A stretch of 64,000 bases of DNA from Zygnema circumcarinatum SAG 698-1b (lineage: Eukaryota; Plantae; Zygnematophyceae). The notes below the pieces were generated by a model. That model saw nothing but the letters and a program-made list of their open reading frames with translations, did no database searches and was not told the DNA's origin. The stretch lies in contig CM074811.1 of the NCBI GenBank assembly GCA_037447605.1, positions 1,612,001 through 1,676,000 on the forward strand. The letters are read 5' to 3'. The translations under genes and the position numbers were made by a program. Below, piece after piece: positions 1,727 to 38,951 of this stretch (position 1 is its first letter; each line of letters opens with the position of its first letter).

Positions 1727-1782
1727 CAACCCTAAAAACCCTGAAAACAAAATTGTTAACACTAAAAACCCTAAAACTTAAA
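1727..1782. repeat. Degenerate telomere-like / telo-box (AAACCCTA) cluster
   Basis: AACCCTAAAAACCCTGAAAA...AAAAACCCTAAAA. Confidence 0.5.
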
Positions 1783-8065: not shown

Positions 8066-8122
8066 GAGTTTTACGCGCCGGGCAGAGGTATCGGGACGGA
8101 GCGCGGCAAGTAAAGTCGGGCG

Positions 8123-9528: not shown

Positions 9529-9660
9529 ACGATACATACGATACACTACGATACGCTATTGCAATACGATACGATACGATATTATATTAAAGCCGCACCT
9601 CCCGCGACCGGCCCCGGTAAGAGCACCCGTGACCGAATCCAACGGACGAAAACGTGCCAC
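9529..9660 (-). repeat. (ACGAT)n microsatellite abutting a GC-rich segment; possible 3' tail of a non-LTR element or SINE
   Basis: Imperfect ACGAT/TACGA repeats at 9529-9580 followed by ATTATATTAAAGCCGCACCTCCCGCG... Confidence 0.4.
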
Positions 9661-10393
9661 GTAAATGCAACTTTATGCCAGCGTGGCAGTTTTTTGTCGC
9701 TAGTGCCGACCTGTCGTTCCTCCATGTGTTCCAGTTAGAAGTAATTTGATTCGACATGGAGCGCGCCAACGTAACGGTAACTGTGCGCATAGAATGGGCA
9801 CCTTAGAGTCCCTGGCTATGGCTTCCCTTCCGCCAGAGAGCGTTCGAGGGAAGGAAGCTCTCGCGTCTGCCTAATGGCGGGCGAGGGCGCTTCAGTGCGT
9901 GCTTTCTGAGATAATTTGAGTCTGGTATGTCTGCCGCTTGCTTGATTTTTTAATGAGTGGAACGGTTTCACTTCTGCAGGCCGTGAGCTTTCCGAAAATG
10001 CGGCGTATCTGTTGAGGATAAAAGTCTTTTTTTGGTTTCAGGCCGTCGTTTTTTCTCAGAGTGTTTGTTTATCCATCTATTCCTGCAGGCAAGGGCATTC
10101 TGGACATGTCTGCTTGCTGTTGCAGACTGTTGTGAGGCAAATTTCGGCGTTCTTCACGCCTTTCGGATGTCTCCTGCTTAGGGATGCTACTGCTGTTTGC
10201 TATGGGATACATGTGGTTTCTGGAATAGGAGGAAGTAGCTGCAGGTGCAGTGTATGTTCATGATTCGCACCTTTGTCTGCTTAAGCAATTCTCAGAGAGA
10301 ATTGACAGAGTTTATTTTGCGCTCCTTGAGCAGGTTTTGGAAGGCTGCATTTCTCATCTCCCATAGGCGAGACTTGAGAGTGCAACCCCCCCT

Positions 10394-13300
10394 ATGGCTG
10401 CGGCTTCTTCTCCTGCGATGCAGGCTCCACCCGGCTTTCCCGCAGTGCCGAGGCTGGGACCTGCAAGTGAACTCAGCGGAAAGGAGTCGAGTGCTCCCTC
10501 AGCGTCAGCGGCGGAGATAAAGGATGAAGTGGTGGACGAAACCAGAGACTTTCCATCAACTCCGCCTCCTGATGCAGGTGGCGAATTGCAGCTTGTGGCA
10601 GGTCAAGAGCAGGTGCGTAAAATGTGTGCTTTACAAACTGCCGCAGGCTTTGTCTTTTTGAGCAATGGAAGGAACTGAAGGAGAAGCCTAACGGTTGCAC
10701 TGAAAGAGCGCATGTTTGGAAGGACACAGTGATGGTGGACCATCTGCAAAGGCTTGGACGTGGTTGCACAACCCTCTTTGCATCCCTTATCTTTGCTTTT
10801 TAATTCTCGTTCACCATCGTGCAGAGACAAATGCAAAGTTTATGGTTATTTTGGGCAGGTTTTTTTTTTCTGTCTTGTTTTATTTGCTGAATTGACACAC
10901 GTCCATTCTTCAGTGTATAGATTTTTTTGTGTCGTTAACCAAACCATGTCGCTGCATTTACTTGCTGTCAGAATTGAAGCAGCTTCATCATCGGTAGTCT
11001 AAGGTGCAATTGCTTAATTTGCCTCGTGCAGCCGTCGTCCTCCGATTCTATCAAGGAAAGGCCACGCTCAAGGCCTCAGACTCCACCCCTTCCAACAGAA
11101 CTGCTTAATCGTGGAATGCGACGCCTTTTGAGAGGTAGTGCAGATGAGGTACGGCCTCCAGCACCCACTGCGCGCACTGCCAGAGGACCAGATGGCACTA
11201 GAGGCTTTAAGTACGGGCGAGGCAAGCCCTTGCCAGCCGCGTGTGGAGAAGAGTTTCCTCCCATGGGGCAAGCCTCAGGCACTCCTGCATCTGCAGCGGT
11301 AGACAGGTTGAAGGACCTAGTTGCAGCGAAAGTAGTGACATCAGCGAGCTCGAAAGCAGACTTGGAGAAAATGAAGAGGGGAATGAAGGAGCTGGAGCAA
11401 AAATCTCATGGTCTAAACAGAGAACATGAAAGCTCGCCCAGCTTGGATGAAAATGGTGATGGCACAGAACGCAGAGACAAGGATTTGGTTGTGGAGGACT
11501 TGCGGGAAAAGCTTGGGGAAGCCAAGTCAGAGATTGCAAAGTTGCAACATGAGCTCTTCGAGGCAAAGTTTGATGTGAATAGGCTTCGAAGCGAGGTGGA
11601 AGATAGGCAGACGGACATTACGCCGCGTGGAATGGAGGCAAGGGAGGCAATAATCTCGGACACTACCAGACTTCAGGAGGAACTCACAGATGCTAAGACT
11701 GAGATTGGCAGGTTACAGCATGAACTTTTTGAAGCTAAGTTTGAAGCCGAACGATTCAAAAATGAGAGAGAGGAGTTGCATGGGCGAAGGTTGGAACTGA
11801 AGCAACTGAATGGGGCAGATCTTGCGGGCAAGGAGTCGCGACAGGAACTGCAAGGGTTGAATTCAGACGTAGGGGCACGAGTAGGGCAGCCAACTGAGCA
11901 AGAGCTGGAGATACTGCGCCTTCGAAACAACATTGCCAATTTTGCAGTCCAAGTAGAGCATCTCAAAAGCAACCTTTCCCAGGCTGAAAAGGCAGTGGGA
12001 CACCTGTCTGCTGAAAACATGCAGCTAAAAGTGGAGGCAGACAAGAGGAGCCACTTTGTGGCTAATCAGGAGATTCAGACAGTGAGCGAGGATCTCCATA
12101 AGAAGGTTGCTGAAGCTGAAGCCGAAGTGCAAAGGATGAAAGATCAGTTAGTAAAGGCGAGGGACGACATTGGAGTCAGAAACCGCCATGTGGGTATTCG
12201 GAAGAGTCTGTCGAGTAGGCCAGAGGAAAGCCGAGAGTCAGAAGGTGGCGGTGGCATGCAACAGGACATGGTTAACGTTTTAGGGCTAGCTGGCTCAGGA
12301 GTGAGTTCACATGTTGAAGACACAGTGGGGTCGGATACGGAAGTCGTGGAAAGAATAGCTACAAATGTTGCCGAGCTAGGCCTAGAGGAACAAGAAGGAT
12401 CAGCAATTAGGCTGGAAAATCTTGGTCCTCTCAATAGAGAACAGCTTGACAGAGACAGTCAAAAGATAAAGGAGCTAGAGTTGAGAGTTCAGCAAGCTGA
12501 AGGAGTGGCAAACTTGCTGATGCGGGAGCTTCAAGAAGCTCGCAATGCCGCTGCTGCATACTCACAGAATGTGCATGAACTGCAAGTGCAGCTGTGGAGC
12601 AGTGGGGCTGTTAACTTGCGCTCTCAAGACAAGGCTCGATTTGGCCCACCAGGAGGTAGTCAACCACCTACCACCCAGGTGCCGATCAATGCAAGCCATG
12701 CTCCACGACTTGCTGAGGGTCATCAACATCCTCCAAACCACCATCATCTCCACCCGCTTGCTCATCAGCACCAACTTTGGATGCAGCAGCAGCGCCCGTT
12801 TCAGTCCCAATATGCCCTTGGTCATGGGCCACCAGGCCCTCCACCATACAGCGGTCCGATGGGGCCTATTCCTGGCTTGCAAGGCTCCATTGGGATGGCC
12901 CCGAGTGCCCCCCCCTACCCTGCACCTCACGGGTATCCCTCGGGAGGAGGGGATGGCCTCCCCCCTCCACCACCTGGTGTGGCCGGCCCTCCCCGGAGCA
13001 TGCTCGGCCCTTCAATCCCAAGGGGCATTACAGCTTTAGCTTTCCGCTCCCCTCCTCCGTCTCCTCTATTTGGAGACAGGTCATCGCAAGCCTATGCTCC
13101 ATCAGCTCCCCCTCTTCCGGTGGGCCATCCTGCAACCTCCTTTGCGCCTCCTGCTCCCCTAGAGCATCTCATGCCTGGGCCTCCTCCCACCTATGGTCCT
13201 CCTTCGCAGCTACCACCACCTGCTGTGAGCAGCAGCCAACCCTCTGCTCCGCCCCATCCTCAACTGCAATACACAGGTCCCCGTCACAGTGGTCAGGAAT

Positions 13301-13665
13301 TTCAAGATTCCCGAAACTCCCCCCCTCACTTTGTGCAGCCTCATATGCCTCCCTCTCGCTCCTCTCCTATGCCATCCATGCCTCCTCATGCGCCAGCAAC
13401 GGAACATGGGCATCTGAGCGTTCCCGTGGGACTGATCCCTACTGCAGTTCTGTTGTCATCGGCGGCTGCTGAACGGGGTACGGCGAGTGATTTGTCCGTG
13501 GAACCAAGCGCACCCCCAAGGCAAAGCTTGGGGGGTGCTTTTACCAGCCCTGTGGGAGGTGGCAGTAGTGGAGCGGCGGGGGAGGCTGCGAAGCAAGCAT
13601 CGCCCGACCTTGGGGATGAGGGCTGGGCGGACGAAGTGATCGTTTTCAGGGGGAGATCGGGCTAG
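10394..13665 (+). CDS. Uncharacterised coiled-coil plus Pro/His/Gln-rich protein (~950 aa), exons 10394-10612 + 11032-13665
   Basis: The 879-codon ORF begins at a GTGCAG acceptor. The upstream ATG exon ends at a phase-0 donor (GAGCAG|GTGCGT), giving an in-frame join. Heptad-rich region with an internal duplication (EAKSEIAKLQHELFEAKF / DAKTEIGRLQHELFEAKF), low-complexity Pro-rich C-half and C-terminus GDEGWADEVIVFRGRSG. Confidence 0.75.
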
Positions 13666-14212
13666 AAGGTGCAAGAGAGCAGCTTGTGGTTACGATGAGA
13701 TATTTTGAGGGGCAGGCCTTTTTGACTGAGGTCTTGTTTGCCCGAGGTGCAGAAGTCATACTTTTGTATATTGCGGTTTGAAGGTTTTGTGACCTGTCTT
13801 GGCACTGAAACTCAAATTAAACATTGAAACGACTGCGCAGTGGGAGAGAGACGATTGTGCAAATCTTCTCCTCGTTTCCATGTGAAAGGTGCGATCGGCC
13901 CCGTGCAGCTGTATTTAAAAGGACAATTTTTGTCGTGATTTGTTGCCAAGCAGACGGGAGAAACCTACAGCACAAATACTGCTTGTCAGGACGGCTGTTC
14001 GCATCTAAAAAGGCCCCAATCTCTGCATTTTGAGTTTTCAGTGTCCACACATTTGATGTCTTCAAGAATACAAGTTCGTTACAAACGAGAACGTGTCCAA
14101 CTCCTTTTTGCGCACTCTTTCAACAGTGAAACAACTAATGAAATGAAAGAAAAAGATAGCAACTAATTGGCTTAATAGGCTAACTAGGTTATTCTGCCGA
14201 TTTTCATCGAAT

Positions 14213-14410
14213 GATCATCGGTGACCTTCGCGGCTGCTTCGAAGGAGGGCTTAAAGCGTTGGTGAGCATAGGCGTAGAATTTAGCTCCAAGCTTTTTTCT
14301 TTTGACCTAAAGTCATTTGCGACCAGTTCCTCGTGGTTCCCCATGCTGATGTTGTCCATGTATACATCTGATGGCATCGCCATCGTGAGATGAAACGCTA
14401 CTTCTTTCGT
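14213..14410 (+). mobile_element. 198-bp 5'-truncated 3' tail of a CRE-like non-LTR element with a 15-bp TSD
   Basis: Flanked by CGATTTTCATCGAAT (14198-14212, 14411-14425). It shares GACCTTCGCGGCTGCTTC and CCATG..CATCTGATGGC..GCCATCGTGAG with the reverse complement of the CRE 3' end at 17958-18140. Confidence 0.7.
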
Positions 14411-14444
14411 CGATTTTCATCGAATTGAGTTAACAACGATATCT

Positions 14445-14594
14445 ATCGAACGAATCGATACCAATATTTATCGAGCGAATCGATACCAATATTTATCGAG
14501 CGAATCGATGCCAATATTTATCGAACGAATCGATACCAATATTTATCGAACGAATCGATACCAATATTTATCGAACGAATCGATACCAATATTT
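14445..14594. repeat. 25-bp minisatellite ATCGAACGAATCGATACCAATATTT x6 (x4 at 17788-17887, x6 at 29406-29555, partial at 38711-38752)
   Basis: Direct inspection; period 25, no spacers. Confidence 0.95.
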
Positions 14595-14664
14595 ATCGTA
14601 TCAATATGAAATAGGTATTTTTTCGTATCAAGTAAATACCGATATGTACCGTGTCACTTTCAGG

Positions 14665-15975
14665 AAAATGATGTTTGATTGAACTCACGATGGCAAGGCC
14701 ATCAAATGTACATGGAGAAAATCAACATAAGGAACCAAAAGAAGCGGTCACAACGGACATAAGGACCAAGAGAAAGCCTTGAAACGGAAATCAACTTCTA
14801 GACGCAACAACACGGCACTAAGCAGCCGCCGGCGGTCGCCAATGGGGCGCAGCATGCTGGAAGCGGGCGAAGACCACCGATTCGTCCCAACAGTTCAGGA
14901 AGCAAGACACCGTGAAGGCGACGGAAATGCGCTGTTTTATAAAAGTTGTAAGGATCGCCGAGGGCTTCCGCCGCATCTCGGCGAGCGATGGGCGACCGGG
15001 CGGCGAAGACTTCCAACCGGCATCAAGGCGTTCTCAAAATTCTCGACCGCTAATGGAACAAATCATCGTCGGTACGCCGTGAGCATATGCCGCTTCCTTA
15101 CGGTTGGGCTGCTTCATAAGGCAAATGACGCCTCGCGGCGTGGCGTACGCGATAACAAAGCACGGGCGAAGTCGGATCACCCAATAACACGCCCCAAAAA
15201 TACCGCCGCCGCCCAAAAGAGCAAGGTCAGGCCGCACATTGCGCTCGCCCGCTGAAGTCGGCCGAGGTGGTATAACATGGGTCGGCTCGCGCTGCACAAG
15301 GTAACCCGCCTCCTGAGCCACGGCGGCAATAGCATCACGGACAACATTGTGGGCCAAAATGCGCTCGCCACCGCGTACACACCGAAGAAGATGCACACCC
15401 TGCGCATCAATCGAACGACCACAACCACAACGGGGAGAACCCTGCAAAGGGGGGTGGGGGAGCCCAAGACGAAGACGCGCAGCAAGCTGAAACTGGCTCG
15501 GAGAGAGTCGAAGGGTGGAAAAAATCGGGGTAGCAGCCAGCCACGCCCCTGCACCAGGACCAGCACAAGATCGCAATCGAGCACGCGCAACATCGGAAGG
15601 GAGAGCCGCAATAAGGGTAGAAAACTCAGCAGCAACAACCTCCTCTGTCACAATAGTCTGAACGCGCGAAACAGACTCAACAGCCTTGGAAACAAAAGGG
15701 GGAACACGGGCTTGGGCACTAGAAGGGAGCAAACCATGAGCAGCGCGCAAAGCAATCTGGAAGGGAAGATGACCATCATCAACATGAGCAACAACAGACT
15801 GGAGCAACGGACGATCATCCACAAGGAAACGTGAAGCTAGAACCGGAGCAACAAGCGCCCAACTACCCAAAAAGGCAGGGGATGCAATACGTGTAGTTGG
15901 GACAAGCCCCAAACCGCCTGCAGAAATAGGGAGCGAGGCTTGCAAACGAGCAAGCGGGCCTTCCGGCTGGTCAAA
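14665..15975 (-). mobile_element. 5'-truncated RLE-type (CRE-like) non-LTR retrotransposon, copy 1 (late RT, CCHC knuckle, restriction-like endonuclease, 3' UTR)
   Basis: LPISAGGLGL, LRSCAGPGAGAWL, RLRLGL, CGCGRSIDAQGVHLLRC, HNVVRD, RPDL; C-terminus RQRISVALQR seen in copy 2. Confidence 0.85.
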
Positions 15976-17957
15976 CCACCAGGAGGTAGTCAACCACCTA
16001 CCACCCAGGTGCCGATCAATGCAAGCCATGCTCCACGACTTGCTGAGGGTCATCAACATCCTCCAAACCACCATCATTTCACCCGCCAAGGCTTCATCGC
16101 CATCTAACTTCTTTGATTTAAAGAAATAGCCGCCTCGCTTTCACCTCCCAATACGCCTTGGTCATGGGCCACCAGGCCCTCCACCATACAAATGGGTCCG
16201 ATGGGGCCTATTCCCCGCTTGCAAGGCTCCATTGGGATGGCCCCGAGTGCCCCCTACCCCTCGCGACCTCACCTGCATCCTCGAGGAGGGGATGGCCTCC
16301 CTCCACCACCGGTGTGGCCGGCCCTCCCCTGAGCATGCTCGGCCCTTCAATCCCAAGGGCATTACAGCCTTTTAGCTTTCCGCCCCTCCTCCGCTCTATT
16401 TCATTGAGAGACGTGTCATCGCAAGCCTATGCTCCATCAGCCTCCCTCTTCCGTGGGCCATCCCGCAACCTCCTTTGGCGCCTCCTCGCCCCTAGAGCAT
16501 CTCATGCCCGGGCCTCCTCCCACCTATGGTCCTCCTTCGCAGCCTACTCACCACCCGCCAGGAGCGTGCCAGCCCAACCCTCCGCTTCCGCCCTATCCTC
16601 AACTCCGCAATAATGTGTCCTCGGCCACAAAGGGTCGTGAATTTCAAGATTCCCGAAACTCCCCCCCTCACTTTGTGCAGCCTCATATGCCTCCCTCTCG
16701 CTCCTCTCCTATGCCATCCATGCCTCCCTCAAGCGCGCCAAAGAACGGAACATGGGTATCCGAAATGCTCCCTGGACCGGATCCTCACTTCAGCTTCATA
16801 ATACTCAAGGCCGCCAACGGGCACGGGCGAAAGTGATTTGTCCGGTGGAAATTAAGCGCACCCCCAAGGCAAAGCTTGGGGGTGCTTTTACCAAAACTCG
16901 GGAGGCGGCGTAGTGAGCTGCTGAGGTCATGGGAGCAAGCATCGCCTCATCTTTGGGGATGAGGGCTGGGCGACGTAAGTGATCGCTTTCGTGGGGAGAT
17001 CGGGCTAGAAGGTGCAAGAGAGCAGCTTGTGGTTACGATGAGATATTTTGAGGGGCAGGCCTTTTTGACTGAGGTCTTGTTTGCCCGAGGTGCAGAAGTC
17101 ATACTTTTGTATATTGCGGTTTGAAGGTTTTGTGACCTGTCTTGGCACTGAAACTCAAATTAAACATTGAAACGACTGCGCAGTGGGAGAGAGACGATTG
17201 TGCAAATCTTCTCCTCGTTTCCATGTGAAAGGTGCGATCGGCCCCGTGCAGCTGTATTTAAAAGGACAATTTTTGTCGTGATTTGTTGCCAAGCAGACGG
17301 GAGAAACCTACAGCACAAATACTGCTTGTCAGGACGGCTGTTCGCATCTAAAAAGGCCCCAATCTCTGCATTTTGAGTTTTCAGTGTCCACACATTTGAT
17401 GTCTTCAAGAATACAAGTTCGTTACAAACGAGAACGTGTCCAACTCCTTTTTGCGCACTCTTTCAACAGTGAAACAACTAATGAAATGAAAGAAAAAGAT
17501 AGCAACTAATTGGCTTAATAGGCTAACTAGGTTATTCTGCCGATTTTCATCGAATGATCATCGGTGACCTTCGCGGCTGCTTCGAAGGAGGGCTTAAAGC
17601 GTTGGTGAGCATAGGCGTAGAATTTAGCTCCAAGCTTTTTTCTTTTGACCTAAAGTCATTTGCGACCAGTTCCTCGTGGTTCCCCATGCTGATGTTGTCC
17701 ATGTATACATCTGATGGCATCGCCATCGTGAGATGAAACGCTACTTCTTTCGTCGATTTTCATCGAATTGAGTTAACAACGATATCTATCGAACGAATCG
17801 ATACCAATATTTATCGAGCGAATCGATACCAATATTTATCGAACGAATCGATACCAATATTTATCGAACGAATCGATACCAATATTTATCGTATCAATAT
17901 GAAATAGGTATTTTTTCGTATCAAGTAAATACCGATATGTACCGTGTCACTTTCAGG

Positions 17958-19049
17958 AAAATGAGGTTTGATTGAACTCACGATGGCAAGGCCATCAAAT
18001 GTACATGGAGAAAATCGACATAAGGAACCAAAAGAAGCGGTCACAACGGACATAAGGACCAAGAGAAAGCCTTGAAACGGAAATCAACTTCTAGACGCAA
18101 CAACACGGCACTAGAAGCAGCCGCGAAGGTCGCCAATGTGGGGCGCAGTACGCGCGGGAAGGGGCGGAAGACCACCGGGACGGGTCCCAACAACTGCGGC
18201 ACGTCGAAGGATCGTGGAAGCAAGACACCGCTGTAAGGCGACGGAAATGCGTTGTCGATAAAAAGTTGTAAGGATCNNNNNNNNNNAAAAGAGCAAGGTC
18301 AGGCCGCACATTGCGCTCGCCCGTTGAAGTCGGCCGAGGTGGTATAACATGGGTCGGCTCGCGCTGCACAAGGTAACCCGCCTCCTGAGCCACGGCGGCA
18401 ATAGCATCACGGACAACATTGTGGGCCAAAATGCGCTCGCCACCGCGTACACACCGAAGAAGATGCACACCCTGCGCATCAATCGAACGACCACAACCAC
18501 AACGGGGAGAACCCTGCAAAGGGGGGTGGGGGAGCCCAAGACGAAGACGCGCAGCAAGCTGAAACTGGCTCGGAGAGAGTTGAAGGGTGGAAAAAATCGG
18601 GGTAGCAGCCAGCCACGCCCCTGCACCAGGACCAGCACAAGATCGCAATCGAGCACGCGCAACATCGGAAGGGAGAGCCGCAATAAGGGTAGAGAACTCA
18701 ACAGCAACAACCTCCTCTGTCACAACGGTCTGGATTCGCGAAACAGACTCAACAGTACTAGGGAAGCAAAAGGGGGAACACGGGCTTGGGCACTAGAAGG
18801 GAGCAAACCATGAGCAGCGCGCAAAGCAATCTGGAAGGGAAGATGACCATCATCAACATGAGCAACAACAGACTGGAGCAACGGACGATCATCCACAAGG
18901 AAACGTGAAGCTAGAACCGGAGCAACAAGCGCCCAACTACCCAAAAAGGCAGGGGATGCAATACGTGTAGTTGGGACAAGCCCCAAACCGCCTGCAGAAA
19001 TAGGGAGCGAGGCTTGCAAACGAGCAAGCGGGCCTTCCGGCTGGTCAAA
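17958..19049 (-). mobile_element. CRE-like element, copy 2 (contains a gap)
   Basis: Same 5' and 3' junctions as copy 1; ORF ends ...FYRQRISVALQRCLASTILRRAA...GDLRGCF* at 18111. Confidence 0.85.
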
Positions 19050-20368
19050 CCACCAGGAGGTAGTCAACCACCTACCACCCAGGTGCCGATCAATGCAAGC
19101 CATGCTCCACGACTTGCTGAGGGTCATCAACATCCTCCAAACCACCATCATCTCCACCCGCTTGCTCATCAGCACCAACTTTGGATGCAGCAGCAGCGCC
19201 CGTTTCAGTCCCAATATGCCCTTGGTCATGGGCCACCAGGCCCTCCACCATACGTCCGGGATGGGNNNNNNNNNNNNNNNNNNNNNNNNNNNNNNNNNNN
19301 NNNNNNNNNNNNNNNNNNNNNNNNNNNNNNNNNNNNNNNNNNNNNNNNNNNNNNNNNNNNNNNNNTTCGTGGCGGGAAGTCCGGAATTCCCATCACAACT
19401 CGCGGGTTTGGATGGCCTTTACCTCATACTCGAGGTCACCCTCAACTTCCACTGGAGGGGGAGGTGGTTGGACTCTCCCATCGCTGCGGTATGCCTTAAG
19501 AAGACCCACATGAAAGACCGGATGCACTTTCATATGAGCCGGTAAAGCCAACCGGTAAGCGACCTCACCGATTCGCTTCACGACCGAAAAAGGTCCCATG
19601 AAGCGAGGCCACAACTCTACTGTCTCAGAAGTCTTCTGAGCTAAGTTCGCCGCATTCCGCCAGCGCACTGACACGCCGGGTTGGGTTAATGCAACACGAC
19701 GACGCATCGCCATAGGCTGCCGCTACCTGGCTTGCACGTGGTCCGCTTTGCCCTTCCTCGTAACGCTTACATTTTCCGGAGTGAAAGCACCACCCGGAGT
19801 AGCGACCCTCGCCAGCCTTTCACCAAGGATCCTGAGCCCTGCGGAACATCCATGTTCCACGACGTGTCAGCCATCTCTTGGTCAGCAGGGATTAGAGAGC
19901 GCCGCACCTTCAAAGTTCAAAAAGAACGGAGTGGTACCGATTGATTCCTGGAATGCATTATTAATGGCGTACTCAGCCACCGGGAGCAGTTCATCCCATC
20001 CATCCGGGATGGGTCCCACATAATGCCTCAAATAGTCTTCCAGAATCCGGTTAACCCTCTCCGTCTGCCCATCTGTCTGAGGGTGGAAGGCTGTACTCAT
20101 AGCCTGCTTAGTCCCGATAATACGGAGGATTTCTTTCCAGAAATGCCCTGTGAATCGGGTATCACGATCCGAGATGATCTCAGATTGAAGTCCATGTTGA
20201 CTCCAGACCTTGTCAACGTAGAGTCGTGCGATTTCATCGGCTCCAGCTGTCTTAGCAGTGGGTGCAAAGTGCACCATCTTGCTGAGCCGGTCAACGAACA
20301 CGAGGATGGAGTCAAAACCCCTAGCTGTCACAGGTAAGTCTGTGATCAAGTCCATGCCNNNNNNNNNN

Positions 20369-23160
20369 CAAGATATGCCCAAGATATAACAACTCTCGTT
20401 GCATGAAGTTACACTTCTTTCGCTTGGCATAAAACGTGTGTTTTCGCAACACCTCGAACACTTTGCGTACATGCACAAGATGGTCAGCGTCCGTCTTGCT
20501 GAATACCAGGATATCATCCAGGTAGACCAAGACAAACTTATCCATGCCGACGAACATTTCGTTCATCACAGCTTGGAACGTAGCCGGAGCGTTGGTCAAT
20601 CCAAAAGGTAGCACCTTGTACTGGAAGTGACCAATCGGCGTCCGAAATGCCGTCTTAGGCACATCGGCATCCGTGACACGGATCTGATGGTACCCTTGGG
20701 CCAAATCGAGCGAGGTGAACACCCTCGCCCCTTGTAGACGATCTAGCAGATCATCTATCCGTGGTAAAGCAAACCTGTTCTTTACCGTGATTTTATTGAG
20801 TGCTCGATAATCGATGCACATTCGCAAAGACCCATCCTTTTTGCCTACAAAAAGGATAGGGGCGCCAAAGGGACTTTGGCTGGGTTCAATCCAGCCCTTA
20901 TCACGCAGATTAGCGAGTTGCTTGCGCATCTCTTCGGTCTCCTTTGGGCTAAGCCGATAGATAGGCCTCCAAGGAGGTTTCTGTTCTGGCTCAAGGGGAA
21001 TGGTATGACCCACCCCGCGTGCCGGAGGCAGACCTCTTGGCAGATCGTCTGGGAAAACATCCTCAAACGCTTTCAACAACGGTTGAAACAAAGCTGGAAC
21101 AGTTGGCATTGCCTCACCCGCAGTGGGTTGCCACTCTTGATCCTCGTCATGAGCATCTTCAGTTGCCGTCATGGCTTGCACCATAAATAAGATGCTATCC
21201 GTTTTTAGTGCCCTGCCGACTTGCATGGCTGAGCACAAAAACGACAAAGACGACTACGAAGAGGGCGGTCCCAAAGGACTGCCCGGTTGCAGCGTTATGC
21301 GTTTGCTCCCACTGCGGAGGACGCAATTAGGGACAACAAAATCCAACTGAGCCCCCATAAGAGTCAGCCATTTGCTCCCCAAGATAAAGTCTGTCCCTGG
21401 GGCCAAAATTGTCAACAAGCAGTTGACTACCCCAGAGTATGACTGAATCTTCAATTTCACGCTGACGCTGCCAGAAATCTGACCCGTGCGTCCATCCCCG
21501 AAAGTTACACTATCGGAATGAGGCTGGATTGCAAACCCTGCAGTCCTGACAAAGGCTGCGCTAACAAAGTTAGCGTCCGCGCCAGTGTCCAGCAAAACTG
21601 TTAGTGTAAAGTAGTTAAGGACTTGTTGTACACTAAGTTGTTGGTACTAAGTTCTAAGGAGGGGTGTGCTCATGTTGTCGACATTGTACGGAGGGGCGTC
21701 TAGGCGACCGTACAAGTCTTTAAGGGGTGTGCGTGTAGCGCGCAGAGTCTGATTTGGCANNNNNNNNNNCAAGATATGCCCAAGATATAACAACTCTCGT
21801 TGCATGAAGTTACACTTCTTTCGCTTGGCATAAAACGTGTGTTTTCGCAACACCTCGAACACTTTGCGTACATGCACAAGATGGTCAGCGTCCGTCTTGC
21901 TGAATACCAGGATATCATCCAGGTAGACCAAGACAAACTTATCCATGCCGACGAACATTTCGTTCATCACAGCTTGGAACGTAGCCGGAGCGTTGGTCAA
22001 TCCAAAAGGTAGCACCTTGTACTGGAAGTGACCAATCGGCGTCCGAAATGCCGTCTTAGGCACATCGGCATCCGTGACACGGATCTGATGGTACCCTTGG
22101 GCCAAATCGAGCGAGGTGAACACCCTCGCCCCTTGTAGACGATCTAGCAGATCATCTATCCGTGGTAAAGCAAACCTGTTCTTTACCGTGATTTTATTGA
22201 GTGCTCGATAATCGATGCACATTCGCAAAGACCCATCCTTTTTGCCTACAAAAAGGATAGGGGCGCCAAAGGGACTTTGGCTGGGTTCAATCCAGCCCTT
22301 ATCACGCAGATTAGCGAGTTGCTTGCGCATCTCTTCGGTCTCCTTTGGGCTAAGCCGATAGATAGGCCTCCAAGGAGGTTTCTGTTCTGGCTCAAGGGGA
22401 ATGGTATGACCCACCCCGCGTGCCGGAGGCAGACCTCTTGGCAGATCGTCTGGGAAAACATCCTCAAACGCTTTCAACAACGGTTGAAACAAAGCTGGAA
22501 CAGTTGGCATTGCCTCACCCGCAGTGGGTTGCCACTCTTGATCCTCGTCATGAGCATCTTCAGTTGCCGTCATGGCTTGCACCATAAATAAGATGCTATC
22601 CGTTTTTAGTGCCCTGCCGACTTGCATGGCTGAGCACAAAAACGACAAAGACGACTACGAAGAGGGCGGTCCCAAAGGACTGCCCGGTTGCAGCGTTATG
22701 CGTTTGCTCCCACTGCGGAGGACGCAATTAGGGACAACAAAATCCAACTGAGCCCCCATAAGAGTCAGCCATTTGCTCCCCAAGATAAAGTCTGTCCCTG
22801 GGGCCAAAATTGTCAACAAGCAGTTGACTACCCCAGAGTATGACTGAATCTTCAATTTCACGCTGACGCTGCCAGAAATCTGACCCGTGCGTCCATCCCC
22901 GAAAGTTACACTATCGGAATGAGGCTGGATTGCAAACCCTGCAGTCCTGACAAAGGCTGCGCTAACAAAGTTAGCGTCCGCGCCAGTGTCCAGCAAAACT
23001 GTTAGTGTAAAGTAGTTAAGGACTTGTTGTACACTAAGTTGTTGGTACTAAGTTCTAAGGAGGGGTGTGCTCATGTTGTCGACATTGTACGGAGGGGCGT
23101 CTAGGCGACCGTACAAGTCTTTAAGGGGTGTGCGTGTAGCGCGCAGAGTCTGATTTGGCA
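20369..23160. other. Probable assembly artefact: identical 1391-bp block on both sides of a 10-N gap (similar cases at 52563-56980 and 56837-61074)
   Basis: ORF offsets exactly 1401, 2214 and 2124 bp with identical translations. Confidence 0.8.
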
Positions 23161-28300: not shown

Positions 28301-29625
28301 CCCAAACTCCCCCTCACTTTGTGCGTACCCTCATATGCCTCCCCTCTCGCCCTTCCTATGCCATCCACATGCCTCCTCATGCGCCGAACGGAACATGGGC
28401 ATCTCGAAAGCCGCCTCGCGGGACCGATTCCTACCGCAGCTTCACACACGCATGTCAACGGGTACGGCGAAAGTGATTTGTCCAGGAATCAGCGCACCCC
28501 CAAGGCAAAGCTGGGGGTGCTTTTACCAGCCCCGTGGGAGTGTGGCAAGAGGTGGAGCCGGGCGGGAGGCTATGAAGGCATCTCGACCTTGGGGATGAGG
28601 GGCCATGGACGGTTGATCGCTTTCGTGTGAGATCGGGCTAGAAGGTGCAAGAGAGCGTTCTTGTGGTTACGATGAGATATTTTGAGGGGCAGCCTTTGAC
28701 CGAGGTCTACGGTTCGAAAAGTAAGTCATACTTTGTATATTGGCGTTTGAAGGTTTTGTGACCCGCCTTGCACCAAACTCAAATTAAACATCAAACGATC
28801 GCAAGAAGGGAGAGAGACGATTGTGCACCTTCTCCCTCGCTTTGCATGTGAAAGGCGCGACGGGCCCGCGGCAACAGTATTTCTAAAAGGACAATTTTGT
28901 CGCGATTTGTTGCCAAGCGCATTTTGAGAAACCTACAAAGACAACACGCTTGTCGACGGGTTAAGTCAAGATCTAAAAGGCCCCACCCTGCATTTGAGTT
29001 TTCGTCCACACATTTGATGTCTCTCAAGAATACAAGTTCGTTACAAACGAGAACGTGTCCAACTCCTTTTTGCGCACTCTTTCAACAGTGAAACAACTAA
29101 TGAAATGAAAGATAAAGATAGCAACTAATTGGCTTAATAGGCTAACTAGGTTATTCCCCGGCCATTTTCATCTAATGATCATCTGGGTGACCTTCGGGCG
29201 TCGCTTCGGCGAGGGCTTAAAGCGTTGGTGAGCATGGGCAGAATTTAGCTCCAAGCTTTTCTTGACCTAAAAGTCATTTTACACTACCGCAGGGTTCCCC
29301 ATGCCGATGTTGTCCATAGATACATCTGATGGCATCACATCGCGGAGATGAACAAACGCCACTTCTTTCAATGATTTTCATCAAATTGAGTTAACAACGA
29401 TATCTATCGAACAAATCGATACCAATATTTATCGAGCGAATCGATACCAATATTTATCGAGCGAATCGATGCCAATATTTATCGAACGAATCGATACCAA
29501 TATTTATCGAACGAATCGATACCAATATTTATCGAACGAATCGATACCAATATTTATCGTATCAATATGAAATAGGTATTTTTTCGTATCAAGTAAATAC
29601 CGATATGTACCGTGTCACTTTCAGG

Positions 29626-30956
29626 AAAATGAGGTTTGATTGAACTCACGATGGCAAGGCCATCAAATGTACATGGAGAAAATCGACATAAGGAACCAAA
29701 AGAAGCGGTCACAAAGGACATAACGACAGAGAGAAAGCCTTCAAACGGAAATCAACTCTCAGACGCTAACAACACCAAGACTAGAAGCAAACAAGGTCGC
29801 CAATGTGGGCTAAAGACGCCACGAAGGGCGAAGACCACCGACGGGTCCCAACAACCGCCAAGACGCCGAAGGATCGGGAAGCAAGACAATCGGGCCAGAA
29901 GGCTTACTTCCGGGAAATGCGTTGTCGATAAAAGTTGTGGGTGATCGCTGGGAGGGTTTCCGGGCCGCGGTATCTCAAGGAGCGACAGCGATAAGGAAGA
30001 CTTCCAACCGAAAGTACTAAGGGCAAATTTCAAAAATTTCGACCGCGCCACTTGAACAAACTCATCGGCCGAAGTCGCCAGGTGAGCATGCGCCCTTACG
30101 GCATCACCGCCATGGCAAATGACGCCTCTGCGGTGTGCGGCACCTGATATCAAAGCACTCCGCCGGTCGATCAGCCAATACGACGTCTCAAAATACGTCA
30201 CGTCCAAAAGAGCAAGGTCAGGTCAAGATATCGTTTCACCGCTGAAGTCGGGCCGAGGTGGTATAACATGGGTTGGCTCTCACGCACAAGGTAACCCGGC
30301 CCCGAGCTACCTGGGCCAAGAATAAAGATCACCACAACATCAGGCTAAAATGCGCCGCCACCGCACACACCGGCACATGCACACCCCGCCAAGATCAATC
30401 AAACGACCACAACCACAACGGGAGAACCCTCGCAGCGGGGGTGGGGAGCCCAAGATCTAAGACGCTGTTACAGTTTAAACCGCTCTGAGAGAGAGTTGAA
30501 GGGTGGAAAATCGGCAAGAGCCAGCCACGCCCCTCGCACTGTGACCAAGACAAGACGCGAATGAGTTAACGCCAAGAATACCCAAGGGAGAGCCGCTAAT
30601 AAGCGGGTAGAAAACTCAAGAAGAACAACCTCCCTTCCTCACGCACAGTTCGACGCTATAAACACGCCTGCGGGAAACAAAAGGGGGAACACTCTGCTTG
30701 GGCACTAGAAGGGAGCAAACCATGAGCAAATACAAGCAGCAACTGAAGGGAAGATGACCTCATCATCAACATGATGTAACAAATGATCGAGCAACGGACA
30801 TCATCCACAAGGAAACGCGGAAGCTAGAACCGAGTAACAAGCGCCCAACTACCCAAAAGGCGTGGATGCACATGTAGTTGGGACAAGCCCCAAAACCGGC
30901 CAAGCAATAGGGAGCGAGGCTTGCAACCAGGCAAGCTGCCTTCCTGGCTGGTCAAA
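29626..30956 (-). mobile_element. CRE-like element, copy 3 (indel-rich sequence)
   Basis: Same junctions AAAATGAGGTTTGATTGAACTC ... GGTCAAA|CCACC. Confidence 0.8.
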
Positions 30957-31543
30957 CCACCAGGAGGTAGTCAACCACCTACCACCCAGGTGCCGATCAA
31001 TGCAAGCCATGCTCCACGACTTGCTGAGGGTCATCAACATCCTCCAAACCACCATCATCTCCACCCCGCTGGCTTCACATCACACCAACTTTGGATGCAG
31101 CCAGCTAGCCGCCTGCTTTCACCCCACACATGCTCGTCATGGGTTACCAAAGTTCTCCACCATGGGCCGGGTCCGATGGGGCCTATTCGCTTGTAAGTTC
31201 CATTGATGGCCCCCGAGTGCCCCTACCCCTCGCAGACCTCACACGGGTATCCCTGAGGAGGGGATACCCTCCACCACCTAGGTGGCCGGCCCTCCCCTGA
31301 GCATGCTCTACTCTTCAATCCTTAAGGCATTACAGCCTTAGCCTTTTCCGCCTCTCCTCCTGCCTCTCTCTATTTGGAGACAGTCATCGCAAGCCTATGC
31401 TCCATCAGCTCCCCCTCTTCCGGTGGGCCATCCTGCAGCCTCCTTTGCGCCTCCTGCTCCCCTAGAGCATCTCATGCCTGGGCCTCCTCCCACCTATGGT
31501 TCTCCTTCGCAGCTACCACCACCTGCTGTGAGCAGCAGCCAAC

Positions 31544-34500
31544 TGTAACTACCTGCCCCCTGGCAGGCTGCTCTGAGAGTCTAAGTGTCAAGAGAGGAAG
31601 AGAGAGGGAGAGAGGAGCCGTGAAGCTCACTGCCGTACAAAGAGCTTCTGATCGCCTCCCCATCCGAAAGCAGCCCCCAAGCTCCCCTCCTGAACCCCCT
31701 ACCGCGATGGAGGACCGAGCTGACTGCCTGGCCAGAGTCGCGGGAGCGGAGGATCCTACCACCGATTGGTTATGACAAGCCCGCGGTCTCGCCAAAGATT
31801 CACCTGGCGCGTAGCGACGCTGGCACAAGCCGTCAGGTGGGGCCGGCAAGATTTAATTGGGTACGACCGGACAGAAGTCGATTTCGCTACCGTCCGCATA
31901 GCACGGACGGGTATTTGTCAAGATGCCACCGCGCCCGTAAGTCAGCGCTGCCATGGGCGCGCCGACGCAGTGGCGCGCTGCCAGATCTTCGCCGCGGATC
32001 CAGATATGTCGGTTCGGGTCTCGCGCATCCAGACGGACGCATCAGCATTATCCAAAGGGATCCTCGCTCACGCAAGTATGATCGAGCTCCAAGACCTCTT
32101 TAAGGCGTCTTGGCAGTCAGTTCTATCCTATTCCGCTAGCGCCAAGGATAAGGGGTAGTCATAGTATCACTATGAGTACGCCTCAGTCGTATTTGTTGCG
32201 TTCGCTACGTACTTTCCCCACAGTATGTGACGCCCTGGATTCCTTTGGGAGCGATAATTTTGGCGACCAGCGGCCAAAAAGTGCAGCGCCTGCAATGCAG
32301 GGGTGTCTGGGAGGCACCGGCGTTAATCGGTCAAGTCCACTTTCAGGAAGTAAGCGTGGGCCGGTTCGGGAACCCCCTAGCCGCCCTAAGCCAGCTCACC
32401 CGGCGTGCGCCTCCCGATGCGATCTCGGGGCTTTCAGGTGCGATTTGTCCGGTGCTCTCCGTTTACGTCTTGTATTTCAACTTATAGCCCAGCCATTTCT
32501 GAATATTACGTGGCGGGAAATCGACCTCTACTCCGCGATCTGTGGGTTTGGATGGCCTTTACCTCATACTCGAGGTCACCCTCAACTTCCAGCGGAGGGA
32601 GGTGGTTGGACTCTCCCATGTTAGCGGTATGCCTTAAGAGAACCCACGCAAGAAAGGCGGATGCACTTTCATATGGCCGTCAAAAACCAACCCGGTGGCG
32701 ACCTCACCGGTCGCACTTCATGACCAGAAAAGATTTACATGAAGCCCGAGCCACCTTTCTGGTTCCTTGAAGTAAGTCTTGACATGAAGTTAGCCCGTAC
32801 TTTCGGCCCGATTACTGATAAGCCCCTCGGCTGAAGGTTAATGCAACTGCGGCCCGACGATCGACATAAGGCTTTCTGCCTTGGCCCGGGGCCTTCTTGA
32901 TTACGCCTTGCCCTCTGTAACGCCTCGGACATTTTCCGAGTGAAAGCACTAACGGCGGGAGGTTGACTCCCGCCAGCTCCTCTCACGCCCCAAGGATCCG
33001 GGAGCCTGTGAACATCCATGTTCCACAGATCAGGCTGCTGATCTCTTGGCTGCAGGGGATTTAGAGGATGCTAACCAAAGTTCAAAAAGAATGGAGTGGT
33101 ACCGATTGATTCCTGGAATGCATTATTAATGGCGTATTCAGCCACCGGGAGCAGTTCATCCCATCCATCCGGGATAGGTCCCACATAATGCCTCAAATAG
33201 TCTTCCAGAATCCGGTTAACCCTCTCCGTCTGCCCATCTGTCTGAGGGTGGAAGGCTGTACTCATAGCCTGCTTAGTCCCGATAATACGGAGGATTTCTT
33301 TCCAGAACTGCCCTGTGAATCGGGTATCACGATCTGAGATGATCTCAGATTGAAGTCCATGTTGACTCCAGACCTTGTCAACGTAGAGTCGTGCGATTTC
33401 ATCGGCTCCAGCTGTCTTAGCAGTGGGTGCAAAGTGCACCATCTTGCTGAGCCGGTCAACGAACACGAGGATGGAGTCAAAACCCCTAGCTGTCACAGGT
33501 AAGTCTGTGATCAAGTCCATGCCTACACTCTCCCACTTCCTGTAAGGAGGTGTGAGCGGTTNNNNNNNNNNTCTAACACCATCAAATGCCGCCTGGCACT
33601 CTGGTGTCCATGCATACGCGACACCGGAACGTGTCAAATTGGTAAGAGGTGTTACCAACTTACTAAAGCCTTGGATAAACTTACGAAAATAATTCGCAAA
33701 TCCAAGAAAAGACCGCAACTGATGAAGATCAGCCGGCACAGCCCATGTCTTTACAGCAGACACCTTGGCTGGATCAAGTTTCAGTCCCTGATCGTTCAAG
33801 ATATGCCCAAGATATAACAACTCTCGTTGCATGAAGTTACACTTCTTTCGCTTGGCATAAAACGTGTGTTTTCGCAACACCTCGAACACTTTGCGTACAT
33901 GCACAAGATGGTCAGCGTCCGTCTTGCTGAATACCAGGATATCATCCAGGTAGACCAAGACAAACTTATCCATGCCGACGAACATTTCGTTCATCACAGC
34001 TTGGAACGTAGCCGGAGCGTTGGTCAATCCAAAAGGTAGCACCTTGTACTGGAAGTGACCAATCGGCGTCCGAAATGCCGTCTTAGGCACATCGGCATCC
34101 GTGACACGGATCTGATGGTACCCTTGGGCCAAATCGAGCGAGGTGAACACCCTCGCCCCTTGTAGACGATCTAGCAGATCATCTATCCGTGGTAAAGCAA
34201 ACCTGTTCTTTACCGTGATTTTATTGAGTGCTCGATAATCGATGCACATTCGCAAAGACCCATCCTTTTTGCCTACAAAAAGGATAGGGGCGCCAAAGGG
34301 ACTTTGGCTGGGTTCAATCCAGCCCTTATCACGCAGATTAGCGAGTTGCTTGCGCATCTCTTCGGTCTCCTTTGGGCTAAGCCGATAGATAGGCCTCCAA
34401 GGAGNNNNNNNNNNAAGCGTCAGCCATTTGCTCCCCAAGATAAAGTCTGTTCCTGGGGCTAATAACGTCAACAAGCAGTTGACCACCCCGGAGTAAGACT

Positions 34501-37500
34501 GAATCTTCAATTTCACGCTGACGCTACCAGAAATCTGGCCAGTGCGTCCATCCCCGAAAGTTACACTATCGGAATGAGGCTGGACTGCAAACCCTGCAGT
34601 CCTGACAAAGGCTGCGCTAACAAAGTTAGCGTCCGCGCCAGTGTCCAGCAGAACGACTGCTGAGTGCCCATCGGCTGAACCTTGAAAGGTCATTGCACGA
34701 TGAGCCAAGTGGAAAATGGACCGTAGCACATTCGGTGCGTGGGGGCGCGCTAACCGCCACACAAGGGAATGAGGAGATTTCACCAGCGCACTGGTGGAAG
34801 CTCCAGGCACCCACCTAAGAAGGGAGAAGCCCTTCCTCCAAAGCTTTACCACTTTCCACTCAGTCTGTGGATAAGCCCTCACTGCCACGTGTTGTGGGAG
34901 CAGGACTCGCAGACTGAGTACATGGTCTTTCGACCGCAGCAAGCGCAAGGCATCGAATGCACATTGCACCAAGGCATCACTGCCCATGGCATTCAAGATA
35001 ATGACATGCCATTCATTCATCAAGACAGCATTCGGAAATGCTGTTGGAGTCACAAGCATAGCAGGTGGCAATGAATAATCAGCAGGGAACGCTGTGCATA
35101 CATACAACATGTTCCCGCTGAAAACTCCCCCAATCACATTAAGAATGTCATCCGCCCTTGGAATACAACATTCTACACACTAGTGATAAACTAATCGCCT
35201 TTGCCCCCCTGCAGATCAAGCCCGCAGCGAGACTCTAAACTCGCGGTGGGGAGGCGTTCAGCGGCCCCTTCCCTTCTGTCCTTCACGAAGAGGCGATCAT
35301 AAGACTCTATGCCCCACTTTCACGCGGAAACACTTGTTTTAAGCTGGCGCCAAACCTCCATCTCTCACAGTAGACAGTTTTTTTTCTTGGTACGTAGTAG
35401 TTAGTCTTCTTCTGGTGAGAGGAAGGAAATTTCCTCTTGCCATTCCCCTTAGGTCGGCCGCCTGGCGCACCAGTTTTGCGCGGCTGTTCGACCGTGTCCG
35501 CCCGCGGGGGACGGGAAGGCCCTGCACCATCTGTAGACCCAGCGTCAGTTTGAACCGCAGCTGCAAACATCTGCTCATCATCCATAGGTCCCCAAGGTTC
35601 CAAGGTACGAGGATTCAGCCGAAGCTGCTTCCGAACGTACGGCTTCAAGCCGTGACTGAACCGGAAGAAGAATTCTTCGGGTCCAGGTGGGAACTTGGTA
35701 ATTGAAGCCCAAGCCGCACGCAATTCCCGCAGGAATTCAGCCACGCTTCCAGTCTGCATGAGCGACTGGAACCTGTCCCGTGCAACAGCACTGGGATCCA
35801 AGATGCCAAAATGTTTGAGAAGTTCCAACTCAAACTTCTCAAATTCTTTTCCGATTAAAGCCTTGCGGCCGGCATATGTAGACACTCCATGCCCGCCCTG
35901 GCGGGTGAAGCCGAAGTTCACCCACATTGATGGGGAGGGGCATTGGGTAGCCTGCAGTACCCTTTTGCCCGACCAATGATGGGTGAAGCGTCCGGAATTG
36001 GTCGATCTCCCATAAGGAAGTCGGGGGAACTCGCCCGTTCTGGGGGAGGATCCCATAGCGAGAGCAGGTCCACCATTATCGCCGGAGTCCACCCGGCGCC
36101 CGGCCGAAGGTGGATTCTTTGCTGGCGGTCCGCCCTTCTCGCCCAAGGCGGCCTTGTTTGCTCAGCCAGAAGCGGCCAGCCGGCGGAACCCCAGCCCCTG
36201 GGGGCTGGGGCTCCCGTGGATCCCGATCATTTCTTAGGAGGCAGCCCAGGACCCAGCGAGGTACACAATACGCCCTCTGAGGCTGGCTGCGGCTCCTCTA
36301 TCACCCCCAGGGCTGCCGCCTCTCTGCCAAATATGCTCGGCCAAGACTGGGAGGAGGGAGGGGTTGTGGGGAGCACAGTGTTTGGAGGGAGGTCCCAGAC
36401 CTGCCCGGCCTGCTCAAAAGATCACCGTAGAGGCCCGGTCTGCTTTGGAGGCATCTTCTTTGCTTCGCCATTGAGGCAGCGCCTCAGCCTTGGAAAATTT
36501 CTTATGGCCTCTACCCGGAGAACCCGTCCCAAATCCCGCGAGGATGGGCACCCCATCTTGGCAGGGGAGAGGTGTCCGAGATTGCTCTGCCCGTAGGGGC
36601 AACCCCGCCTCGGCTTGTCTGTCGAAGGCGCCTCTGGTGGGCTGCCGCTCCCGCTCTTTTGCGACGCTGTTACTCACAGCGGCGGCTGGCCATAAGTTCG
36701 GCCCGTGAAGAAGAAGGGGCAGCGGAGGTGGAAGCCGAGCGTCATCATCCCATGCAAGTGCCAGTCAGCGCCTTGATTGGCGCCCATGTCCGTCCTCCTC
36801 AGGAATACGGAGAAGGGGAGGTGAGTGGTGGCAGCCATCTGCTTAGGGCAGCGCCCTCGGCATTACTGTGGCTTGCTGGCCCCACCCAAGAAAACCAGCG
36901 ATCTAAAGCGGCGGCTCACGTCTGATGTAACTACGCTGGCGGTATTTGCTCTGAAGTCTAAGTGTCGAGAGAAGAGAGAGAGAGAGGAGAGGAGGCGTAA
37001 GCTCAATGCTGGTACAAGAGCTTCCGGATAGATCTCCCACATCGTGCCCGACCCCATAAGCAGTTGAACCCCTACGGCATGGAGGGCCAGGGAGGCGGGA
37101 CACCCCGGTCGAGCCCACCGCGTGGCGGAATCCTTGGCAGAAGCGGTCATTAGGACAACCCGATAGTCTCGCCGCATCTCACCCCGAGCGTAGCGCTTAG
37201 CCAGCCCAGCCGTCATCTGGCAGCGCCGCGGCTAAAATAAGCCGGTGATTTTGTGACCAGTAATGCGATGCAGACGGTACTTGTCAAAAGATGCCACGGC
37301 GTCTAGGTAAGGTCAGCGCCCAGATGGCGCGCTAAAGCATCTTGGCCAGCGGCCAGATCTCGGCGGCGGGATCCCGTATCTTGGGTTAGTGCATGTATGC
37401 AGGGCGACGATGCAATCCAAAAAGGATCCCGCTTGCGCGGCGAAGTCGAGCAAGACCCCTTCGCGGTCTTGGCGGCGTCCTATCTTTATTATTTGGCGGC

Positions 37501-37572
37501 TGCGCGATGAAGGGGTAGTCATAGTATCACTATGAGTACGCCTCCGGGGTCACGCTGTAGCGTTACGCTACA
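31544..37572 (-). mobile_element. Ty3/Gypsy chromovirus, copy 2
   Basis: LTRs ~31544-32210 and 36926-37572 with TGTA..TACA ends; 5-bp TSD CCAAC (31539-31543, 37573-37577), equal to gene-3 position 13236-13240. Gag 35307-36146, Pol 33071-35137 (protease LLDTGA, RT, IN) and chromodomain KWLGY near 32490. Confidence 0.93.
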
Positions 37573-38951
37573 CCAACCCTCTGCTCCGCCCCATCCTCAA
37601 CTGCAATACACAGGTCCCCGTCACAGTGGTCAAGAATTTCAAGATTCACGAAACTCCCCCCTCACTTTAATGTGACCTCATATGCCTCCCTCGCTCCTCT
37701 CTATGCCATCCATGCCTCCTCATGCTTGACAGCAGACATGGGCATCACGAAGCGTTCCCGTGGGGCCCGATTCCTACTACTTGATTACATTTGTCGCCGG
37801 CTGGCGAGCGGGGAGAATGCGGCAGTGATTTGTCAGGTGGAACCAAAGCGCACCCCAAGGCAAAGCTTGGGGGTGCTTTTACCAACTTTCCTGTGGGAGG
37901 TGGCGTGAGTGGGCTGAGGGGAGGCTGCTTGGCTTGGCATCACTTGGAGCAGGATGAGGGGGCTGGGGCCGAGTGATGGATTTTTAGGGGTCGGGCTAGA
38001 AGGTGCAGAAGGCGACTTGTAGTTTGCGATGAGATATTTTTGAGGGGCAGGCCTTTTTTGGCTGAGGGTCTTGTTTTACTTTGAGAGTCGCGGTCATACT
38101 TTTGTATATTGCGGTTTGAAGGTTTTGTGACCTGTCTTGGCACTGAAACTCAAATTAAACATTGACACGACTGCGCAGTGGGAGAGAGACGATTGTGCAA
38201 ATCTTCTCCTCGTTTGCATGTGAGGAGTGCGATGCGGCCAGATGCGGTTGTATTTAAAGGACAATTTTGTAGGTGATTTGTTTACTTAGCGGACGGGGAG
38301 AAACCTCTGACACAAATACTGCTTTGTCGGGGCCGGTACGTGCATCTAAAAGGCCCCAATCTACGCATTTTGAGTTTTCAGTGTCCACACATTTGATGTC
38401 TTCAAGAATACAAGTTCGTTACAAACGAGAACGTGTCCAACTCCTTTTTGCGCACTCTTTCAACAGTGAAACAACTAATGAAATGAAAGAAAAAGATAGC
38501 AACTAATTGGCTTAATAGGCTAACTAGGTTATTCTGCCGATTTTCATCGAATGATCATCGGTGACCTTCGCGGCTGCTTCGAAGGAGGGCTTAAAGCATT
38601 GGTGAGCATAGGCGTAGAATTTAGCTCCAAGCTTTTTTCTTTTGACCTAAAGTCATTTGCGACCAGTTCCTCGTGGTTCCCCATGCTGATGTTGTCCATG
38701 NNNNNNNNNNCGATACCAATATTTATCGAACGAATCGATACCAATATTTATCGTATCAATATGAAATAGGTATTTTTTCGTATCAAGTAAATACCGATAT
38801 GTACCGTGTCACTTTCAGGTCAATGTTAATCGCATTGATCTGAAACGGATTTATATCGAATCGATCCGACGAAAATCGGCAATGTCTATCCTGCTGCCCT
38901 GCATCCCTCGGATGGCAAAGTTTTGGAAGAGAATTTGGATGACAGCAGTTC

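Follow-up and report, generated by a model that had tools for sequence, protein, structure and literature searches.

Layout of the locus

We analysed a 64,000-nt window of the genome of the streptophyte alga Zygnema circumcarinatum SAG 698-1b (GCA_037447605.1, CM074811.1 1,612,001-1,676,000, forward strand), in which the 3' end of a host gene recurs in direct copies with fragments of a long interspersed element (LINE) between them. All positions below are those of the window. The host gene is an open reading frame (ORF) of 879 aa taken from the ORF list (11026-13665, plus strand), with a coiled-coil-like N-terminal part and a proline-rich C-terminal part. It had no significant Pfam match, and an Atlas search with it was uninformative. 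The last 340 codons of this ORF and about 1 kb of downstream DNA make up a 2019-bp block (12646-14664), hereafter block A. It is followed directly by the LINE fragment, hereafter fragment X, which spans 1311 bp on the minus strand (14665-15975).

The layout was determined by comparing the window with itself and by aligning the junction regions. The end of A meets the 3' end of X (TTTCAGG/AAAATGA) at 14664/14665, 17957/17958 and 29625/29626, and the 5' end of X meets the start of A (GGTCAAA followed by CCACCAGG) at 15975/15976, 19049/19050 and 30956/30957. The flanks common to these recurring junctions extend over hundreds of bases, which is far above chance. A preliminary description of this DNA had reported both junctions, and a 2019-bp block A with X lying exactly between the end of one copy and the start of the next. 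Our alignments reproduced all of this, with each junction present three times in identical form. No short duplication around X was found in the junction alignments. The left flank meets A at 12645/12646, while unrelated DNA, TCAATGTTAATCGC, takes over after the end of the fourth A at 38819. BLASTN and TBLASTX detected no X-like sequence before 12646 or after 38819, in agreement with the earlier claim that the DNA after the last A does not belong to the element. We infer that the unique DNA after 38819 is the empty-site flank.

The first copy, A1 (12646-14664, plus strand), holds the 3' coding end of the gene, its stop at 13665 and about 1 kb downstream. It is the clean copy, continuous with the rest of the gene, and is followed by the 1311-bp X1 (14665-15975, minus strand). 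In A2 (15976-17957, plus strand), 100 bp at the start and ~1.1 kb at the end equal A1 except for a minisatellite that is 50 bp shorter, and the stretch 16076-16990 is noisy. X2 (17958-19049, minus strand) contains a gap (18277-18286) in place of about 258 bp. The contig that follows this gap (18287-19265) is clean, matches X1 and the beginning of A at 98-100% identity, and carries the junction between the 5' end of X and the start of A. A3 begins with a part of 216 bp (19050-19265, plus strand), of which the first 204 bp are 100% identical to the start of A1, and which is cut by a gap of 100 N. Its second part (28226-29625, plus strand) is followed by X3 (29626-30956, minus strand), a noisy copy with 75% identity to X1 and many one-base indels. 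A4 likewise consists of two parts on the plus strand (30957-31543 and 37573-38819). A gap in the second (38701-38710) hides about 195 bp, after which the unique DNA begins.

One and the same Ty3/gypsy long terminal repeat (LTR) element, which has TG..CA ends and a 5-bp duplication, CCAAC, splits both A3 and A4, in each case at A1 coordinate 13236-13240. Accordingly, the first part of A4 ends in CCAAC, and the second part of A3 begins with the CCAAC duplicate of the insertion site. The copy in A4 (31544-37572, minus strand) retains its TG..CA ends, has protease, reverse transcriptase (RT), integrase and gag matches, and is colinear with the copy in A3 (19366-28225, minus strand). The latter contains three 10-N gaps and an exact duplicate contig (20369-21759 and 21770-23160). 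About 2 kb of it (23171-25311), including a piece that resembles 62085-62412, has no counterpart in unit 4. The preliminary description recognized the units of A and X and overlooked these LTR insertions. Since units 3 and 4 share the insertion, the unit that was copied last measures about 9.4 kb rather than 3.3 kb, and the array kept changing after it had formed.

A 25-bp minisatellite lies near the end of A in units 1-3, at 14439-14598, 17782-17891 and 29400-29559, with 6.4, 4.4 and 6.4 copies, respectively. Its copy number is the sole clean-looking difference among the units.

The remaining differences among the copies have an unusual distribution. In 100-bp windows, stretches of 100-1100 bp shared unchanged by all copies are interspersed with others that differ by 20-40%. 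Private differences number 7 in copy 1 and 39, 112 and 82 in copies 2-4, respectively. Edit-distance alignment of a typical noisy block of 900 bp gave about 60 mismatches against about 90 one-base indels, insertions being about as frequent as deletions, and the same indel-dominated pattern was found between X1 and X3 and between the two LTR-element interiors. As a control we used a natural 199-bp array of leucine-rich repeat (LRR) exons in the window, which at a similar overall distance showed 127 mismatches and 18 gaps. Transitions were about as frequent as transversions among the copy differences. Natural divergence and a process resembling repeat-induced point mutation were therefore rejected, as both the equal transitions and transversions and the excess of one-base indels over mismatches are unlike the LRR array. 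This points to uncorrected long-read fill between clean contigs, rather than evolution, as the probable source of most of the apparent 10-25% divergence. Any dating or phylogeny of these repeats from the assembly would then be wrong, as the divergence between copies is here largely read noise. The noise also suggests that long reads truly crossed several units.

Clean sequence contains four junction types (left flank/A, A/X, X/A and A/right flank), and an arrangement of at least left-A-X-A-right is thus firmly supported. The previously described array of four A copies separated by three element copies holds for the junctions as assembled, but the count comes from a patchwork assembly, and only A-X-A is backed by clean sequence. 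Similarly, A is indeed the 3' end of a host gene and is repeated as assembled, but its fourfold duplication relies on an unreliable copy number.

Identity of the LINE fragment

We next examined what X encodes. The translation of X1 contains a post-RT linker, a CxC..H..C knuckle (CxC-x8-H-x3-C), AHN..RD and RPDL motifs, and a 3' tail of about 200 nt. The reading frame is broken after RPDL, with remnants of D-V-x-V and K..Y / P..E..G motifs in shifted frames. As a single sequence, X matched nothing in Pfam, PDB or Atlas. Two homologues, P0001 (52% identity) and P0002, came from a word-indexed search, whereas an exhaustive profile search returned 10,578 relatives. Nine full-length relatives possess an RVT_1 domain 200-300 residues upstream of the domain that matches X. 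In 13 long relatives, Pfam gave no match to an apurinic/apyrimidinic endonuclease (APE; Exo_endo_phos); nine relatives were screened at E <= 0.001 and five at E <= 1, two being common to both sets. Among solved structures (PDB), the RT of one relative, P0012, matched R2 proteins only. A profile of the C-terminal domain built from 19 sequences had its best solved match in the CCHC and restriction-like endonuclease (RLE) region of R2Bm (residues 932-1014), with an E-value that is borderline (0.011). All of these 19 relatives have the same residue in the columns for C, C, H, H, K and Y.

Protein homology of X to the family starts exactly at the junction at 15975. Extensions by tblastn had carried the homology 15-22 codons into the start of A, but this candidate was rejected: the profile scored 65.0 with the A-derived residues and 64.2 without them, and 68 of 200 shuffles reached the score given with these residues. 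As the profile shows no signal in the start of A, the 5' boundary of X stands at 15975.

Together, the motifs, the RT-carrying and APE-free relatives and the R2-type matches identify X, at the level of sequence, as the C-terminal third of a 5'-truncated RLE-type LINE. The 5'-truncated RLE element of the preliminary description was thus borne out, with homology beginning at the junction and relatives that combine RT and RLE. The R2-like features are a CCHC knuckle and a PD-(D/E)XK nuclease in X itself and an RT upstream in the relatives, X being 5'-truncated. The lack of an APE is likewise a property of the relatives, X itself being truncated. Dualen and RandI elements combine APE and RLE in one protein, and the APE-free relatives argue against such an assignment, although indirectly given the truncation of X. 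Unlike CRE-type elements with a single specific target, the family has 3' ends with different flanks (14665, 14410 and 47657). We therefore place X among RLE-type LINEs, while the CRE label used previously was not confirmed and is not assignable, since X carries no RT for phylogeny. We also considered a trypanosomatid-type element with the 199-bp array as a satellite. This candidate was rejected, as the genome is that of a streptophyte alga and the array consists of LRR exons.

The last ~190 nt of X occur twice more in the window. One tail-only copy of 198 bp lies inside A (14213-14410, plus strand), inverted relative to the tail of X1. A third tail copy of about 190 nt (approximately 47657-47850, minus strand) shares its start position with the copy in A. 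The copy in A is bounded by perfect 15-bp direct repeats (14198-14212 and 14411-14425), for which 0.15 matches are expected in the window. The distance from the last conserved block to the 3' end is 19 nt in X1 and 21 nt in the copy with the 15-bp duplication, and the final ~10 nt of the tail vary among copies. As X shares its tail with two independent short copies, its 3' end is that of the family. The 3' boundary given for X in the preliminary description is thus reasonable and fits the end fixed by the tail-only copy with the 15-bp duplication. That the tail-only copies start at the same base suggests a candidate non-autonomous partner of an RLE-type LINE, resembling a short interspersed element.

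Further features of these tails were observed. The tail copy at 14296-14389 and the X1 tail at 14684-14775 form a 95-bp inverted repeat with 76% identity, whose loop of about 290 bp holds the minisatellite. Within 450 bp, two insertions of the same family lie tail to tail. The 15-nt motif of the short duplication (14198-14212) recurs in inverted orientation with 2 mismatches at 38864-38878, 45-59 bp past the last A, and a small element with terminal inverted repeats may surround the insertion site.

Elsewhere in the window lies part of a related LINE. This N-terminal and early RT part (57486-58475, plus strand) matches residues 71-424 of P0012, the relative whose residues 681-948 match X1, and recurs at 59610-60599 through an assembly duplicate.

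Origin of the duplication

With its authentic 3' end and truncated 5' end, X occupies exactly the space between copies of A, and it is absent from the outer ends of the array. These properties are those expected of an insertion-coupled duplication, and the simplest reading of the locus is that the 2019-bp duplication arose in this way. The repeat abuts both ends of the insert and the outer flanks are those of an empty site, as in a target-site duplication made by target-primed reverse transcription (TPRT). We consider it somewhat probable that the duplication came from the insertion event itself, with the element's own nuclease making the second nick 2 kb upstream.

The junctions, the nature of X and its absence from the outer ends are observed directly, while the order of events and the source of the distal end are what we infer from them. 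An RLE-type, R2-related LINE would have inserted in antisense orientation about 1 kb downstream of the proline-rich host gene, with reverse transcription primed at a plus-strand nick after 14664. Reverse transcription would have stopped or been truncated after 1.3 kb, and the other end of the cDNA would then have been joined to the opposite strand 2019 bp upstream, within the coding region. Fill-in of the 2-kb staggered interval would leave X between two direct copies of A, which amounts to a target-site duplication of 2 kb. Additional units could have come from unequal exchange between A copies, and one of these units would have gained the Ty3/gypsy insertion before being copied in turn.

Since the outer ends are free of X, a simple tandem duplication of a segment comprising A and X is excluded, as the preliminary description had argued. 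Two more elaborate routes would reach the same arrangement. Either X inserted with a short duplication, A and X were duplicated in tandem and the last X was precisely lost, or X inserted at a pre-existing joint between two A copies. Tandem duplication and unequal exchange are common, and the LTR insertion shared by units 3 and 4 shows that this array changed after its formation. However, the first route needs a breakpoint exactly on the truncated end of X as well as a base-perfect excision, and X has no flanking short duplication. For the second, X would have to insert precisely at a novel joint, with neither duplication nor deletion. We regard both routes as highly improbable.

Several observations weigh against an insertion-coupled duplication with a long stagger. 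It is known from a single locus only. Only 450 bp from X lies an ordinary 15-bp duplication made by the same family, so a 2-kb stagger is not habitual for it, and the length of 2019 bp falls outside the usual family range when set against the 15 bp of the tail-only copy. No convincing motif is shared by the two putative nick sites at the boundaries of A, or by these sites and the copy with the 15-bp duplication. The assembly adds to these doubts. Eight gaps lie within or beside the array, and none is a continuous join. Apart from the gaps in X2 and A4 described above, they include one of 100 N (19266-19365) that replaces about 1.3 kb, comprising what remained of the first A3 part and the beginning of the LTR element, and one (20359-20368) that replaces about 270 bp. 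The gap at 21760-21769 lies between two identical 1391-bp contigs, and the sequence joined by that at 23161-23170 lacks colinearity with unit 4. The gap at 34405-34414 hides about 380 bp, while the length hidden by that at 33562-33571 is not estimable, as its counterpart in unit 3 is the gap at 20359-20368. Exact duplicates occur across 10-N gaps in three places (20369-21759 and 21770-23160, 52563-54766 and 54777-56980, 56837-58950 and 58961-61074); in two of these, contig ends that overlap by 2204 and 2114 bp at 100% identity were set end to end. Exact duplicates of 1.4-2.2 kb across gaps show that the scaffolder makes false direct repeats of about 2 kb. Finally, identities of 75-90% between copies are uninformative on the age of the copies, and the unit number of four is unreliable.

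The first of these points bear on an alternative in which the insertion is unchanged, but the free end of the cDNA was taken up at an independent break or replication-fork end 2 kb upstream, possibly on the sister chromatid, giving a LINE-bridged tandem duplication. Such a model has been proposed for L1-bridged tandem duplications in tumours (PMC7058536). The nearby 15-bp duplication would make a 2-kb stagger by the family's own nuclease exceptional, and the two boundary sites of A have no common motif; together they lean slightly towards an exceptional event. On the other hand, in Chlamydomonas one LINE family has long duplications at over half of its insertions, which points to the machinery of the element, and an independent break is inseparable from a distant second nick by sequence alone. 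We consider capture by an independent break unlikely. The earlier proposal of a giant target-site duplication through second-strand priming about 2 kb away therefore stands as far as the coupling of the duplication to the insertion is concerned, whereas the distant nick is not separable from capture of the cDNA by a separate break.

The state of the assembly raises a further alternative, in which contigs of A, X and the LTR element were misthreaded, or the junctions derive from another locus or from an extrachromosomal circle of A and X, and the host locus has a single A. The three exact duplicate contig pairs across 10-N gaps, the indel-dominated noise and the near absence of private differences in unit 1 speak for such an artefact. 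Conversely, A1, X1, A2 and the start of X2 are free of gaps (1-18276), as is the stretch from the LTR element through the second part of A3, X3 and the first part of A4 into the next LTR element (contig 23171-33561). Both junction types are present in clean sequence, the noisy stretches resemble single-molecule reads that cross units, which favours a real array, and a false gap fill would not yield an element fragment with an authentic 3' end. An artefact of this kind is improbable in our view. Considering all of the above, what the preliminary description observed is partly confirmed and its interpretation, insertion followed by amplification, is partly supported.

Relation to known insertion systems

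The preliminary description took TPRT duplications to be normally tens of bp or less, a premise that is outdated. In mutation-accumulation lines of Chlamydomonas reinhardtii, more than half of the de novo insertions of Dualen-4b_cRei had flanking duplications of >50 bp, with a median of 900 bp (PMC9977147). Lopez-Cortegano et al. 2023 read these as very long target-site duplications, the previous record being 126 bp for rotifer R9 (PMC9977147). Like X, Dualen-4b_cRei is a green-lineage LINE with an RLE domain that is found between direct target duplications of hundreds of bases to kilobases. However, Dualen carries both APE and RLE, a pair suggested by the authors as the cause of the long stagger, whereas the relatives of X carry RT and RLE but no APE. 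The Dualen events are also de novo and comprise many insertions, while the Zygnema case is one locus in a weak assembly that was later amplified.

It is conceivable, though we propose it only tentatively, that target-site duplications of kilobase scale are within the reach of an RLE-only LINE in a streptophyte alga, and that long staggers are general to green-algal RLE-type TPRT. If true, this generality would contradict the dual-endonuclease explanation for Dualen, and such an insertion could seed a tandem array that multiplies the 3' end of a gene. If confirmed by reads, the locus would be the second green-lineage LINE insertion that duplicates kilobases of its target and the first for an element with a restriction-like nuclease only. 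It would then bear on second-strand cutting or capture in an old class of retrotransposons, and would illustrate one way in which a gene end becomes a tandem array.

L1-bridged tandem duplications in tumours, in which the cDNA end is joined to a distant break (Rodriguez-Martin et al. 2020, PMC7058536), also resemble the arrangement around X, since here too a direct tandem duplication is bridged at its joint by a LINE that is 5'-truncated and has an authentic 3' end. They differ in being somatic and of megabase scale, and in that L1 belongs to the APE-type elements.

Among RLE-type LINEs, R2 and R9 (R2Bm, 8GH6 and 8IBW) share with the family of X a CCHC knuckle and a PD-(D/E)XK nuclease after the RT, as well as TPRT-type junctions. 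R2 junctions sometimes carry duplicated upstream target, which has been ascribed to top-strand cleavage outside the preferred site (PMC2718515). While R2 and R9 are site-specific in ribosomal DNA with duplications of <=126 bp, the family of X occurs in at least three unrelated contexts within the window. The CRE clade (CRE1/CRE2, SLACS and CZAR) resembles the family in its RLE-type domain order, and the relative P0018 has an N-terminal C2H2 finger. The specificity of classical CRE members for spliced-leader genes or repeats was not seen for the family in the window. Kilobase duplications around LINE insertions are thus already documented, and the Zygnema case is of the same kind, in an apparently RLE-only family of the streptophyte lineage and with subsequent amplification.

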